From Takakia lepidozioides (lineage: Eukaryota; Plantae; Bryophyta): a stretch of 64,000 nucleotides of DNA. The notes below the pieces were generated by a model that saw only the letters and a list, made by a program, of their open reading frames with translations, did no database searches and had not been told where the DNA came from. Numbering within the stretch: position 1 is the stretch's first letter; each line of letters opens with the position of its first letter. This document shows positions 30,830 to 51,211 of the stretch, one piece after another. Both the position numbers and the translations under genes were made by a program. The stretch spans positions 46,190,001-46,254,000 of the forward strand of contig CM060731.1 of NCBI GenBank assembly GCA_030704615.1, given 5' to 3'.

Positions 30830-32977
30830 TCACACAACCTTCACTCTCATCCTTGCAGACTTCGCATTCACTGTTGGAAAGTACTTTTCAAGATTGCTCA
30901 ACTCAGCCTCGGTAATGTCTTGCAGATAAAATAGCTTCTTGAACTTGCACAAAACCCTATCTCCTCCATCACCTCCATCCACAGGTTCCCTCAGAACTAC
31001 ATCTGGATCATCTACTAGGACCCCTGCACAAATTGTCCCCTCCAAATGCCCAAGCAGGCTAAATAGCAGTATAGAATTGCAAGAATAAGATGTGACAGAC
31101 ATAGCTTCTATGGACATGATTCTATAAAAGCGTTGTTTGGATGAGTCACGAATGCACCACTGCTTCTCTTTCGCTGTGTCAATGATTGTGTCTTGGATTA
31201 TGACATCATATTCTGCCTCAAGGCCAGTGGAAGTGCAGACAGCCGGATCCGGATCGTCTATGTCCTCGTACTTGTTCAACCAGGTCCTCGCATCACCTCG
31301 CATGAACGTTCGAGGTGCCCAGCGAAATCCCACCTTGTTCAATTTTGTGCCAGACAGTAAGATGATCTCGCGGGGGAGCTTTTCAATGCGCAGGAGGAAA
31401 CTTTGCATGCGCTCTTCTGGTGGAAGAGTCACCAGTTCAAAGGCGTTCAGGTTCAACAGCCCAGATACTGCAAGCGTCTCGTCTTCCTTTCTGCTCGTGG
31501 TTCGCCAGCGGAGACAACATACCACATCGCGAAAGCCAACTGAGGCCCTTCTTCGGTACTTCGTGAGACTGTTGATTTCATTTGCAAGGGAACATAGCAC
31601 GGGGTTGAAGTAATCTTCAGATCCTGGAACTGGCCAGAGCTCTTCCAGGGCAACCAGGCCATCTGAAAACTCGAAAAATAGCTTCTGAGCCAAAGCTGCT
31701 TCTTGGAATGTCCAGAGTCGCTGCATCCATCCCGAGGCCAACACATACAACAATTTCTCCTCGCGTGACGCAGAACTCGAAATTTCTCGAATGACGGAAT
31801 CAATCACCAGCACTACCGCTGCATCTCTGTAGGTCTGGGCCATTAACCCTATCGCCTTCTTTCTCATGTCCTTGATCGCAGGGATGCAGAGTGCATCAAT
31901 CCAGAATGTCCCGCCAGGATCTTCCAGGATCTTGCTGGTCATTGCCACAAGCCGCTTGACTTGGCATGATGGCAATCCTTCCTCAGTCGTGCCCATTAGC
32001 CCGTCAGCCCAGACATGGGATATCGCTACATAAGGCGTTGTTGAGGAGTTGCTAGAGAGCAGCTCATTGTGGGGCGGAGGGCATTGGACAACCGGTATCT
32101 TACCAGACGACAGGGAACCAACAATGTTCTGCAACGATGGCTGAGACCTGTCGCAGTGGCATGTTTCTGCGACGTGCTTTGCCACACAGCTGCTAGTATC
32201 CACCATATTTAACACGCACGACTTCGAAGTACAATTCACGTGTCCCTTGGACGACTCTCTGATATGGGGGGCTTTGCAAGTACGTGCGTATCCCACCATG
32301 CATACGCTCTCTGAAATAGTATTCACAGTAAATGGACACCATCCCTTTGCGAACATGTCAATTCTCCCGTACTTCCTTTCAAATGGCGTCAATAGAAACG
32401 TCCAGGAGTACAGAACCAAACTTTTAAACTCTTCGGGAAACGCTGCGTAAGACAACTGCACTGCTTCAGCAATTGATCCTATCTGGATGAGGATATCCGC
32501 CACCAAGTGCGGTTCCAGACCGGCTTGCAAAAACACTTTGTTCTCCGTGACATTAAAAGATTCAGTCCAAAGCCTGCTCTTTGCCTGTGTGAGCGTAGTC
32601 TCAACGCGGCTTGCCCACTGCCTGCATGCTTCCCTGTCATCAATTTCAAGTTGTCGAATACGGATCCGCCAGTTCCGCAACATCAACAAGAAATTTTTAC
32701 TTGTCAACACCGTCCTGCCGCTGCTGTCTAACTGTAGTAGTTCACTTTCAACAATTTCAACTTCCAACGCTGCTTCCAACAGGCCAAACGTCAACAGGCA
32801 TTGCAGCTCTGCCGCGTTTCCACGACTCGAATTAGGGGAGGTCTTGGGACGGATTCCCAAGTACTCATTGAACGGTACTCGATCATATCCGTCATGCTTT
32901 CCACCCAGCCATAGTGCATCTTTGAAGATGAAGGTCTGGTTCAAAGGTGCTGAAGGCAGCTCAGGTGGAGATGACAT
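30830..32977 (-). CDS. Fungal-type HET (heterokaryon incompatibility) domain protein, 715 aa, single exon
   Basis: HET blocks YVAISHVWADG, FWIDALCIP, AIGLMAQTYRDAAVVLVID and SGWMQRLWTFQEAALA; downstream RTTSRKEDE and FRWAPRTFM. N-terminal LTFGLL, GWCPF and a His/Cys cluster as in fungal HET proteins. Uninterrupted ORF. Confidence 0.9.
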   Translation of the reverse strand: MSSPPELPSAPLNQTFIFKDALWLGGKHDGYDRVPFNEYLGIRPKTSPNSSRGNAAELQCLLTFGLLEAALEVEIVESELLQLDSSGRTVLTSKNFLLMLRNWRIRIRQLEIDDREACRQWASRVETTLTQAKSRLWTESFNVTENKVFLQAGLEPHLVADILIQIGSIAEAVQLSYAAFPEEFKSLVLYSWTFLLTPFERKYGRIDMFAKGWCPFTVNTISESVCMVGYARTCKAPHIRESSKGHVNCTSKSCVLNMVDTSSCVAKHVAETCHCDRSQPSLQNIVGSLSSGKIPVVQCPPPHNELLSSNSSTTPYVAISHVWADGLMGTTEEGLPSCQVKRLVAMTSKILEDPGGTFWIDALCIPAIKDMRKKAIGLMAQTYRDAAVVLVIDSVIREISSSASREEKLLYVLASGWMQRLWTFQEAALAQKLFFEFSDGLVALEELWPVPGSEDYFNPVLCSLANEINSLTKYRRRASVGFRDVVCCLRWRTTSRKEDETLAVSGLLNLNAFELVTLPPEERMQSFLLRIEKLPREIILLSGTKLNKVGFRWAPRTFMRGDARTWLNKYEDIDDPDPAVCTSTGLEAEYDVIIQDTIIDTAKEKQWCIRDSSKQRFYRIMSIEAMSVTSYSCNSILLFSLLGHLEGTICAGVLVDDPDVVLREPVDGGDGGDRVLCKFKKLFYLQDITEAELSNLEKYFPTVNAKSARMRVKVV

Positions 32978-33206
32978 GTTGAAAATTAACGAGTACTAGA
33001 ACTCTTCCAGGAACCACAATTCAAAATCTACAAGCGGAACACTCTCCACTTGAACAAAAGCACACGCACTCTCACCTGATAGGCAAGGGCGACTAACTTT
33101 CCAAAATGGAGAACCAGCGTCCACCCTTTCGTTCCTTATCAACCACAAGATTGAAATGAGCAGGATTCCCTGAGCAACAGGTGACCAACCCAACCATCTG
33201 AACAAA

Positions 33207-49993: not shown

Positions 49994-51211
49994 ATGAGTT
50001 CCACCGAGTCCCTGCTGTCCGCGCAATGGCGGAGCCCCTCCGACATCTTGTCGGTCTTACTCATTATTGGCGGTGATGTACTACAGAAAGCTCTTGCTCA
50101 ACTCTCAGGAGATCGTCTGGTGCCCGTAGCATTCAGTTTCGGATGGGTAGCATACTCGTTCAGCACCCTGATGGCAATCGTGGGAGATGGACGCCTAATG
50201 CCTCTGCCGGACTACCCCGCCAAGGTCATCAACGCCGAGTCTGGCTACATCCGCTCCAACAGATCCTGGGTACTCGGCCGGTTGCTCCGGGACTTCGAGT
50301 TTCCACTTGCTGACGACATCGGCTTACATATTACTGTCTTCAAAGCGGAAGAAAGGGAAGCAGGTACTCCAGACAAGGACTGGTGTTGGGCAAGCGGAGT
50401 TCTGGTCATAGTTTTGCAGCTGGGAATTGCAGCTATCCCGTGCGGATTGTACGGTGACCCGGGAATCCTCCTTGCGACAGCTGCAGGAACACTGCTAGCT
50501 CTGACTACAGGCTTGTTACCGCAATGGCGGTTTGAAAAGTGGGCATGCCGAACAGAGAGCAAGAAGGTGGTATGTCTGACTGGCGGGAATGGCACAAGGC
50601 ATGTGATGGTCATCATCGGCAGTGGAAGAGGACTGGATCTCGAGGATCTGGCAGCGGCGGAGAGCCCAAGGATGAGGCGACGATCCGAGCAGGGCTACCG
50701 CCTGGCGAAGCGTGTGCGTGACGAAAATGGGGCACTCCTGAAGGACAAAGAAGTTTTGATGCTTGGCAGTGTCCCTGCCTCGTTCCGGATAACCCAGGTT
50801 ATGTGTGTGGTGCTAGCAGCTCTGTGGATTGTATTTCTCCTCACGGTTGCGGGGCTGAAGCAGAACACATGGTACCTGCTTGCGGTTGGCTGTCTCGGCA
50901 TGATCCAAAATGTGGTGGTTGCAGGGGCGAGTCGGGGACAAAGCACAACAGGCATTCACTTGACTAAAATTGAGTCATTTGAGCAACCAAAGGTCATGGA
51001 TGCATTGATGGATCTTGAATTAAACCATAAAAATGTCGGGAGGTCTCTGCTTAAGGAATTCTTTAATGGGAACTTACGACCTGCAGAAAAAAACTGGTGG
51101 GATGGCACGGACAAGGAATCGTACGAGAGCGATAGGCGCAGGAAGAGGCCTGAGAGCTTGGATGCAGGGCGATATGGTGCTCCTTCCGCATTCCAGTCTC
51201 GTCAGATATGA
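49994..51211 (+). CDS. Multi-pass membrane protein of unknown function resembling a fungal family, 405 aa, single coding exon
   Basis: QWRSPSDILSVLLIIGGDVLQKALAQL...PVAFSFGWVAYSF...GDGRLMP...RSNRSWVLGRLLRDFE...LPQWRFEKW...GNGTRHVMVI...LDLEDLA...GLKQNTWYLLAVGCLGMIQN...KVMDALMDLE...SLLKEFF, motifs I recall from fungal hypothetical proteins. About 4-6 hydrophobic segments. Confidence 0.75.
   Translation: MSSTESLLSAQWRSPSDILSVLLIIGGDVLQKALAQLSGDRLVPVAFSFGWVAYSFSTLMAIVGDGRLMPLPDYPAKVINAESGYIRSNRSWVLGRLLRDFEFPLADDIGLHITVFKAEEREAGTPDKDWCWASGVLVIVLQLGIAAIPCGLYGDPGILLATAAGTLLALTTGLLPQWRFEKWACRTESKKVVCLTGGNGTRHVMVIIGSGRGLDLEDLAAAESPRMRRRSEQGYRLAKRVRDENGALLKDKEVLMLGSVPASFRITQVMCVVLAALWIVFLLTVAGLKQNTWYLLAVGCLGMIQNVVVAGASRGQSTTGIHLTKIESFEQPKVMDALMDLELNHKNVGRSLLKEFFNGNLRPAEKNWWDGTDKESYESDRRRKRPESLDAGRYGAPSAFQSRQI

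Follow-up and report, generated by a model that had tools for sequence, protein, structure and literature searches.

A 64,000-nucleotide stretch of the genome of the moss Takakia lepidozioides (the window) is rich in transposable elements (TEs) and holds genes of the HET kind that were probably derived from fungi. On this reading, two of its genes (HET-715 and MEMB, the latter encoding a membrane protein) belong to families found across mosses, a third (HET-ankyrin) belongs to a different subfamily, and the products would act in the manner of a HET protein and its partner. The HET-ankyrin gene now functions as a gene of the moss, being transcribed, having gained an intron in its 5' UTR, and having kept its reading frame.

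The three genes were first recognized as long, stop-free open reading frames (ORFs) in a first-pass annotation made from the sequence alone, and an ORF check confirmed all of them as intact (Table 1). They encode a HET protein of 715 aa, a HET-ankyrin protein of 1042 aa, and a six-helix membrane protein. The MEMB frame extends from 49991 to 51211 on the forward strand, and its real ATG at 49994 gives a product of 405 aa. As had been described, HET-ankyrin and MEMB are transcribed away from each other; their start codons are 5.1 kb apart, and the distance from the first HET-ankyrin exon (~46209-46289) to the MEMB ATG is ~3.7 kb. Between HET-715 and MEMB, which are 17 kb apart, there are TEs and another gene. 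Plant-type TEs had been said to separate the genes, and RVT_1, Copia, and Ty3 fragments were found around them. Pfam searches with 37 smaller ORFs around the genes returned TE domains only, with neither an F-box nor a HopQ1-like match, and a nucleoside-hydrolase match was absent among the ORFs scanned in the window. A tblastn search of the window for the HET-715, HET-ankyrin, and MEMB families likewise revealed neither additional copies nor fragments.

Table 1. Genes, transcript features, and TE remnants in the window
Feature	Position	Strand	Evidence or remarks
HET-715, intronless CDS, 715 aa	30830..32977	-	Pfam HET 37.2 bits, 4.8e-9
Reverse-transcriptase fragment, broken non-LTR or other retroelement	36619-37302	-	RVT_1 5.1e-27; between HET-715 and HET-ankyrin
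Copia-type polyprotein fragments	38384-38979	-	Pfam gag_pre-integrase and Pol_BBD (Pol beta-barrel)
HET-ankyrin 3' UTR, ~680 nt	41090..41769	-	X5 and X6 contigs extend from 41090 and 41138 into the CDS; no cover beyond
HET-ankyrin CDS, 1042 aa	41770..44898	-	Pfam HET 67.1 bits, 2.9e-18; Ank_2 9.4e-37
In-frame length polymorphism, 42 nt (14 codons), aa ~399-413, acidic insert	43662..43703	-	Joint 43661->43704 in X5 and X6
HET-ankyrin 5' UTR, second-exon part	44899..45369	-	X5 contig 11 covers 43814-45367; X6 pieces to 45228
Spliceosomal intron in 5' UTR, 839 nt, GT-AG	45370..46208	-	X5 joint 45367->46207, ends CT..AC on + strand, cut +2
HET-ankyrin first exon, non-coding	46209..46289	-	X5 records 11-13; contigs end at 46289-46320, 5' end approximate
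MEMB, intronless CDS, 405 aa	49994..51211	+	Six transmembrane helices; AF2 pLDDT 90.9, pTM 0.86
Ty3-type element, broken into three ORFs	54967-59334		Pfam

This DNA genuinely belongs to a moss chromosome. Coding regions that lack introns and whose closest matches are fungal proteins might be expected from fungal contamination, and a chimeric join in the assembly could be suspected because no single short-read contig crosses the repeat at ~41240-41745, where these contigs break, to link the HET-ankyrin gene with its 3' flank. The HET-ankyrin 3' UTR overlaps a high-copy repeat, with a DNA depth of 100-300x at ~41100-41900. However, both explanations are highly improbable given the remaining evidence. 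Coverage is even: DNA contigs cover 30 of 30 bins at 29-38x across the HET-ankyrin gene and its flanks. Furthermore, the stretch is present in three independent studies of this species, with an identity of at least 99% and a few SNPs, and in one plant metagenome. TEs of host type lie interspersed among the genes, the HET-ankyrin 5' UTR has a GT-AG intron, and homologs reside on Sphagnum and Ceratodon chromosomes, where the Ceratodon copy is located between ATP-synt_B and Glyco_hydro_88 genes. The earlier argument that this region is not a contaminant therefore stands on even depth, recurrence in three studies, and interleaved host-type TEs.

Two independent data sets (runs X5 and X6) establish that HET-ankyrin is transcribed in the moss, and one of them, X5, also shows splicing. 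Contigs were placed on this gene and its flanks, and the transcript evidence in the window concerns HET-ankyrin only. Cover in both runs is confined to the gene and its UTRs. On the gene strand, the intron begins with GT (46208-46207) and ends with AG (45371-45370), the latter preceded by a pyrimidine-rich tract. We ruled out that X5 and X6 represent low-coverage DNA because neither run has cover past the ends of the transcript and because the X5 joint has GT-AG ends on the gene strand. X5 and X6 lack a 42-nt segment of the coding region that both the window and DNA run X1 contain. We also considered this gap as an intron and rejected the idea, as its ends are CG..CG and it is in frame within a low-complexity repeat. 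The HET-ankyrin reading frame is kept across the three accessions seen.

The HET-ankyrin protein comprises a HET domain (aa ~20-290), an acidic insert rich in Ser, Asp, and Glu (~290-418), a conserved HET C-terminal module (~418-672) that is common to stand-alone HET proteins, and an array of ~10 ankyrin repeats (~690-1040). Its invariant residues are SHVW 92-95, W145/D147, and R198, W200, T201, Q203, and E204. The ankyrin repeats belong to a 99-nt repeat family and are 63-81% alike at the DNA level, whereas the repeats of HNWD genes are highly conserved. Pfam matches are limited to HET and ankyrin families, which agrees with the first-pass observation that an NB-ARC or NACHT switch is missing. 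Classification as a fungal or plant NLR was rejected because Pfam finds no central NACHT or NB-ARC domain. A HET-repeat system described in 2014 (PMC4986451) has the same arrangement of an N-terminal HET death domain and a C-terminal repeat array that is a possible sensor, but HET-ankyrin differs by lacking a NACHT or NB-ARC domain between the two.

The Pfam HET family (PF06985) has a gathering cut-off of 22.5 bits, which the HET-715 and HET-ankyrin scores in Table 1 both exceed. From its N terminus, HET-715 is predicted to consist of a helical domain, a His/Cys cluster, the HET domain, a linker of helices, and, at the C-terminal end (~575-715), a beta-sandwich. The AF2 model has a pLDDT of 87.6 and a pTM of 0.88. 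The His/Cys cluster (H246, C249, C254, H268, C273, and C275) is invariant, and so are the HET columns S320, H321, V322, W323, W359, D361, C364, W422, T423, Q425, and E426, which include the motifs ISHVW (319-323) and WTxQE (422-426). Structure and sequence searches for HET-715 gave only generic helical matches for the N-terminal domain. Searches with the whole 715-residue model returned no TIR match, which for a model of this size does not speak against a TIR-like fold.

The six transmembrane helices of MEMB form three hairpins (17-36/45-63, 129-155/156-176, and 259-291/292-313), and three larger soluble segments on the same side are predicted to form an alpha/beta domain. MEMB is conserved in fungi, where its homologs are hypothetical proteins. 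It matched no Pfam family, including HET-C (PF07217). In structure searches, Foldseek against the PDB returned only matches with E>2, the best VIA-align matches were generic helical bundles (Z up to 5.9), and the Atlas yielded fungal hypothetical proteins only. These searches recovered no known fold relative, and the "membrane executor" role assigned to MEMB in the first-pass annotation is a guess.

All three proteins nest among fungal sequences in phylogenetic trees, as would be expected if the genes are of fungal type as originally proposed. The trees are unrooted, those of two families come from the "quick" method, and metagenomic sequences make up many of the rows; the root was taken from the taxon spread (hundreds of fungal rows and few moss rows). 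HET-715 is 58% identical to its Ceratodon relative and 55% to that of Sphagnum, and its moss clade of nine rows (SH-aLRT 97%) is placed inside fungal sequences. MEMB is 75% identical to the Sphagnum protein and 56-62% identical to Agaricomycete proteins. Its moss clade (99% support) falls inside a Tricholoma/Agaricomycete clade, and the sister group has a compact, fungus-like locus. Overall, HET-715 and MEMB nest in Agaricomycete-rich or Eurotiales groups, and HET-ankyrin nests among Pezizomycotina, to which all named members of its subfamily belong. HET-ankyrin is in a clade with 100/99 support beside Sordariomycetes, and the sister clade holds Chaetothyriales. No moss homolog of HET-ankyrin appeared in the searches run; its nearest relative in an exhaustive search has 59% identity, and a metagenome scan for close relatives found none. 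Therefore, both marks of a fungus-to-moss transfer, a nested clade and physical integration, are present.

Orthologs or paralogs of HET-715 and MEMB in Sphagnum and Ceratodon point to both being old moss families that, judging from these sequences, have been vertically inherited since their transfer. The three genes do not appear to have one shared history. The HET-715 and MEMB families would have been acquired from fungi before the Sphagnum-Bryopsida split and then inherited, and the simplest history is perhaps one in which a HET-MEMB cluster moved as a block. Such a block transfer would agree with the "fungal regions" of Physcomitrium. HET-ankyrin may have been acquired separately, or it may be an old acquisition that was lost from other sequenced mosses.

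We also considered that the genes are tolerated passengers of a TE-rich region, which are transcribed but serve no host function and remain intact through slow moss substitution or selfish behavior. The TE-rich neighborhood would suit such passengers, as would the fairly high dN/dS of HET-715 against other mosses (0.41-0.58), a range that is also compatible with relaxed constraint. Within the species, changes in HET-ankyrin are mostly non-synonymous (three changed codons versus two silent changes between X5 and the window), and one Sphagnum copy carries an internal stop. In addition, the HET genes of P. patens are reported to be truncated (bioRxiv 10.1101/2023.10.30.564737, citing Sun et al. 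2020). Against this explanation, ORFs of 715, 1042, and 405 codons retain all family-invariant residues despite a dS of 0.65-0.72 to Sphagnum and Ceratodon, and selection would be needed for them to survive such divergence. The dN/dS of MEMB against Sphagnum is 0.24. Moreover, the 42-nt indel preserves the frame, and HET-ankyrin has a host-type spliced UTR. We therefore regard a passenger status as unlikely.

A HET gene is found within 10 kb of MEMB at five of six fungal loci, often head-to-head (Armillaria, L002; contig L006; Aspergillus, L007; Cytospora, L012; and Phialocephala, L013), and is absent within this distance at the sixth (L010). A rough estimate of the probability of this linkage by chance is ~1e-5, for loci that are few, non-random, and not fully independent. 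In Aspergillus fumigatiaffinis (L007), it is a HET-ankyrin gene that is head-to-head with MEMB, at 862 bp, and the HET-MEMB spacing in Cytospora is 442 bp. Sphagnum (L003) exhibits HET-MEMB linkage too, and MEMB thus has the tight linkage across species seen for two-gene systems of a HET protein and its partner. No MEMB gene is present within 10 kb of Ceratodon HET-715. The divergent HET and MEMB layout noted in the first-pass annotation thus recurs in fungi. Its suggestion to look for fungal genomes with all three families adjacent was borne out in part: MEMB-HET pairs recur, but there is no fixed trio. Relatives of the HET-ankyrin subfamily at three fungal or metagenomic loci (L001 and L008/L009) have no MEMB neighbor, and because of this the position of HET-ankyrin beside MEMB in the window may reflect chance or a permissive region.

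These linkage data bear on the original proposal that HET-ankyrin is a sensor, HET-715 a second signaling enzyme, and MEMB an executor, all co-opted as one immune module without a nucleotide-binding switch. Consistent with this proposal, the genes are all intact within 20 kb, HET-ankyrin and MEMB are divergent, as a HET-ankyrin gene and MEMB are in A. fumigatiaffinis, and linkage of MEMB to HET genes is seen in a range of fungi. However, this linkage is pairwise, in that fungal MEMB genes pair with any one or more HET genes; the histories of the three genes differ; and relatives of this HET-ankyrin subfamily are found apart from MEMB. The divergent genes of the window do not share a compact promoter because they are 3.7-5.1 kb apart, and MEMB is unlike known pore-forming or executor folds. 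We therefore find it quite unlikely that the three genes constitute one module. A different proposal, which we offer tentatively, is that MEMB is an overlooked, conserved partner of HET proteins across Dikarya. The two genes might form a cell-death or surveillance module, often divergent, in which the recognition domains of the HET proteins are interchangeable. This module might have entered early mosses in one piece and persisted there; a second, independent HET-ankyrin gene from Pezizomycotina might later have settled beside MEMB and recreated an Aspergillus-like divergent pair.

Fungal two-gene systems offer an analogy for how such a pair could operate. According to Kaneko and colleagues in 2006, het-c and pin-c of Neurospora crassa are reportedly adjacent genes whose products interact to trigger death, and the partner is said to be membrane-associated. 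The het-B system of Podospora anserina likewise consists of two genes, Bh and Bp, with products that interact to cause death (PMC10890737, PMC12881547). These systems resemble the window genes in having a HET protein with a C-terminal recognition domain and an adjoining partner gene, and they differ in that MEMB is neither HET-C (PF07217) nor PII-like. The HET domain is considered a TIR-like death domain, proposed to be distantly related to TIR and to carry a conserved glutamate (PMC10890737, PMC12881547), although enzymatic (NADase) activity has not been demonstrated for any HET domain (PMC10890737, PMC10197012). Both HET-715 and HET-ankyrin keep the WTxQE motif, which on this proposal would liken them to the TIR NADases that act in the immunity of plants, animals, and bacteria.

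By analogy with het-c/pin-c and het-B, the C-terminal recognition domain of a cytosolic HET protein (the beta-sandwich or the ankyrin array) would monitor a partner or ligand, for which the cytosolic domain of MEMB is the best candidate. A change in this partner would then free the TIR-like HET domain, leading to cell death or stress signaling. On these grounds, we infer a physical or functional coupling of HET and MEMB proteins and a role in moss defense. A complex prediction for HET-715 (aa 241-715) with MEMB scored 0.00 and carries no weight for or against binding. Mosses do not undergo hyphal fusion, and therefore any role would involve recognizing other organisms or responding to stress.

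That mosses carry fungal HET genes has been published before, and this locus extends known work and overturns nothing. The transfer is not of a newly seen kind, since fungal-origin HET genes in mosses were published in 2012 and 2020. A HET superfamily of fungal origin was described in P. patens (Yue et al. 2012, PMC3493653), and the Physcomitrium patens regions FR1 and FR2 contain HET, a conserved fungal gene (CF), a HopQ1-like gene (HLP), and mobile elements (Sun et al. 2020, as recounted in PMC7911284). The available accounts propose a role for moss HET regions in fungal interactions (PMC3493653, PMC7911284). As far as those accounts describe them, FR1 and FR2 are like the window in that the nuclear DNA of a moss holds HET genes of fungal origin, mobile elements, and a conserved fungal gene. 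The HET genes of the window are full-length, in contrast to the P. patens copies; a HopQ1-like gene was not found in the window; and a HET-ankyrin gene with a Pezizomycotina-like history is present. MEMB and CF are both conserved fungal genes, and the two are set side by side here by published description only.

What is added here is the MEMB-HET neighborhood across fungi and the observation that HET-ankyrin is transcribed and spliced in moss. With this locus, the set of fungus-derived moss genes gains a HET-ankyrin gene that is full-length and transcribed, and a case in which such a gene has come to have a host-style spliced 5' UTR. If MEMB does travel with HET across Ascomycota, Basidiomycota, and mosses, it would be a concrete candidate partner for HET proteins. 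Precise gene targeting is possible in mosses such as Physcomitrium, and the HET-MEMB pair would then provide a genetically tractable plant system for learning how HET domains kill cells.

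The three long open reading frames (ORFs) described in the first-pass annotation are present as reported, and tblastn detected each of the three families just once within the window. They encode a HET protein (HET-715), a HET protein with an ankyrin array (HET-ankyrin), and a membrane protein (MEMB). A Pfam scan revealed no NACHT or NB-ARC domain in HET-ankyrin and matched no Pfam family to MEMB. According to a hydropathy scan, MEMB has six hydrophobic helices that form three hairpins with loops of 4-7 residues, and its longer segments all fall on one side. AlphaFold models of MEMB (pLDDT 90.9, pTM 0.86) and HET-715 (pLDDT 87.6, pTM 0.88) are confident. 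In the latter model, a helical N-terminal domain is followed by the alpha/beta HET core, which a helical linker connects to a C-terminal beta-sandwich. Searches with the whole HET-715 model gave no informative match; structure searches with MEMB found no relative among solved structures, and its ESM Atlas matches are fungal hypothetical proteins only. Comparison with its HMMER relatives identified the “unknown domain” of HET-ankyrin (aa 418-672) as the C-terminal module that stand-alone HET proteins usually carry, and an acidic insert (about aa 290-418) as peculiar to the window gene.

Features of the window and of the homolog loci used for neighborhood comparison
Location	Feature	Positions	Strand	Description
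Window	223-aa ORF	6480-7151	+	weak B3 DNA-binding-domain match, below Pfam cut-off
Window	431-aa ORF	21303-22598	+	CCHC zinc knuckle; retroelement gag-like protein
Window	HET-715 ORF	30830-32977	-	715 aa; Pfam HET 37.2 bits (cut-off 22.5)
Window	Reverse-transcriptase fragment	36619-37302		from ORF domain scan
Window	Copia fragments	38384-38979		from ORF domain scan
Window	HET-ankyrin ORF	41770-44898	-	1042 aa; Pfam HET 67.1 bits; strong ankyrin array
Window	MEMB ORF	49991-51211	+	405 aa; mechanical start GTG, true ATG one codon further on (49994)
Window	Ty3/Gypsy-type retrotransposon	54967-59334	+	three long ORFs: gag (377 aa), protease (282 aa), RT-RNaseH-integrase (785 aa)
L002, Armillaria borealis	HET genes			three HET genes, two of them full HET-715-type, plus a degenerate HET-715-like gene directly head-to-head with MEMB
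L006, 4.9-kb fungal contig	HET gene			741 aa; 314 bp upstream of MEMB
L007, Aspergillus fumigatiaffinis JAAAPY010000091.1	HET + ankyrin gene	4287-9139	-	1592 aa; HET (Pfam 6.1e-8), very long ankyrin array; 862 bp head-to-head from MEMB
L012, Cytospora mali	HET genes			either side of MEMB, one head-to-head at 442 bp
L013, Phialocephala subalpina	HET genes			three around MEMB
L013	TPR-repeat protein	15300-19267	+	1246 aa; beside HET-MEMB-HET cluster
L010/L011, fungal locus	MEMB homolog			no HET gene within 10 kb
L003, Sphagnum jensenii OZ276452.1	HET-715 homolog	17066-19177	+	5.5 kb from MEMB homolog

The integration of these genes into plant DNA, for which the first-pass annotation had argued, is supported by sequencing runs. 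A run search recovered the 41.5-51.4 kb stretch from three independent studies of the species, and a small part of it from a plant metagenome. Four runs were mapped to positions 40500-46499 only. There, DNA run X1 yields contigs with a depth of 29-38x in every bin, over HET-ankyrin and its flanks alike, except at about 41.1-41.9 kb, where a high-copy repeat breaks short-read contigs. This repeat (~41100-41900) has a DNA depth of 100-300x versus about 30x and overlaps the HET-ankyrin 3'UTR; 184 nt inside it (41255-41440) are missing from one DNA contig. Fungal contamination or a chimeric assembly is very unlikely.

Two further runs, X5 and X6, cover 41090-45367 and 41138-45228, respectively, and no more, which corresponds to the coding sequence with ~680 nt downstream and ~470 nt upstream. 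X5 also joins 45367 directly to 46207. Read in the direction of the gene, the skipped 839 nt open with GT (46208-46207) and close with AG (45371-45370), and a pyrimidine-rich tract precedes the AG. Because their cover ends with the transcript and X5 skips a GT..AG stretch, we identified both as RNA runs. HET-ankyrin, the one gene of the three that the transcription data cover, is therefore transcribed in two independent studies. Its sole intron is this 839-nt spliceosomal intron in the 5'UTR, and the coding part needs no joining. Both RNA runs also lack 42 nt (14 codons; 43662-43703) of the acidic low-complexity insert. An intron was ruled out because this gap has CG..CG ends, and we regard it as an in-frame length polymorphism between accessions. 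SNPs in HET-ankyrin are few, and the reading frame stays open.

The coding sequences show signs of constraint. Every family-invariant residue is kept in alignments of HET-715 (including H246, C249, C254, H268, C273, C275, and the WTxQE motif) and HET-ankyrin (including SHVW, W145/D147, and R198-E204). Pairwise Nei-Gojobori dN/dS is 0.24 for MEMB versus Sphagnum (dS 0.65), 0.41 for HET-715 versus Ceratodon (dS 0.72), and 0.58 for HET-715 versus its closest moss-clade sequence (dS 0.25). For HET-ankyrin versus a relative in a gene-dense 7.5-Mb contig, it is 0.21 with dS saturated.

The surrounding DNA is rich in retroelement ORFs, and GC skew is strongly positive at 54-62 kb, the region of the Ty3/Gypsy-type element. 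A 73-nt dispersed repeat, probably a short mobile element, occurs just outside HET-715 (29274-29346) and, 20 kb away at 81% identity, just upstream of MEMB (49326-49398). The F-box remnant claimed earlier was not found in the Pfam scans of ORFs around the three genes.

The best matches of HET-715 are a transcript-sized contig (74%) and then Ceratodon purpureus (58%), followed by clusters in which the named proteins come from six Sphagnum species (53-57%); identity to fungi is 47% or less. MEMB is 75% identical to proteins of Sphagnum balticum and S. jensenii and 56-62% identical to those of Armillaria, Dendrothele, Tricholoma, and others. The trees, two of which were built by a quick method, include many rows without a taxon name, and their roots were inferred from taxon distribution. 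In them, the moss HET-715 rows group in a single clade (97% SH-aLRT), next to a Eurotiales clade and inside an Agaricomycete-rich set. The window and Sphagnum MEMB proteins likewise form a clade (99%) within a starred clade with Tricholoma; the sister of that starred clade consists of 52 Agaricomycete rows, and Ascomycota lie opposite. The sister group of the moss MEMB clade has a compact, fungal-looking locus with long exons. This placement of both moss clades among fungal rows agrees with the fungal origin proposed at first pass.

HET-ankyrin has different relatives. Its best matches come from metagenomes or assemblies (54%, and 51% for the protein in the 7.5-Mb contig), the named ones belong to Sordariomycetes (40-44%) or to Chaetothyriales (36-38%), and no moss homolog appeared among the matches of the protein homology searches. 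The careful tree places it in a clade with Sordariomycetes (100/99 support). With aa 1-680 as the query, an exhaustive HMMER search returned 1764 relatives, the closest not above 59%, and a metagenome scan found no close kin. Judged from these sequence relationships, its history is separate and Pezizomycotina-like. It may be a later independent transfer, or an old gain that was lost in other sequenced mosses. Its divergence from fungi (54-59%) resembles that of HET-715 and MEMB and therefore does not distinguish these two histories.

The neighborhoods of MEMB homologs were compared at six fungal loci, one of them in two assemblies, and at one Sphagnum locus (eight loci in all). A HET gene lies within 10 kb of MEMB at five of the six fungal loci. 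The chance probability of this linkage is near 1e-5 if each 40-Mb genome is generously taken to have 150 HET genes, a rough value given that the loci are few and non-random. The neighbors belong to different HET subfamilies, and thus the constant element is MEMB plus some HET gene. By contrast, MEMB was absent from the neighborhood at three loci with relatives of the window HET-ankyrin subfamily. Nor was MEMB found within 10 kb of the Ceratodon HET-715. The 1592-aa gene of Aspergillus fumigatiaffinis is without a Pfam match on record in the collection. The Sphagnum HET-715 homolog aligns over 730 residues with an in-frame TGA inside (annotated product, 608 aa) and may be a pseudogene, an intron-containing gene, or a truncated allele. 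The TPR-repeat protein of Phialocephala subalpina is possibly NLR-like, and HET-MEMB clusters may extend to other fungal immune-repertoire genes.

HET-715 and MEMB are old moss families, and the simplest account of both is that a linked fungal HET-MEMB cluster was transferred before the Sphagnum/Bryopsida split. HET proteins of several fungal systems work together with a protein encoded by the neighboring gene. Because its linkage is conserved, MEMB would be the best candidate for a partner of HET proteins. The first-pass proposal that the three genes form a sensor-enzyme-executor pathway is unsupported as stated. Its weaker core is supported, namely that fungal-type death-domain genes and a membrane protein have been integrated and maintained in a plant.

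Fungal HET genes have been known in mosses since Yue et al. (2012), who reported 20 genes in P. patens (PMC3493653). As summarized in PMC7911284, the “fungal regions” of Sun et al. (2020) combine HET genes and mobile elements with a HopQ1-like gene and a conserved fungal gene. The best reading of the window is a further “fungal region” of this kind in a different moss.
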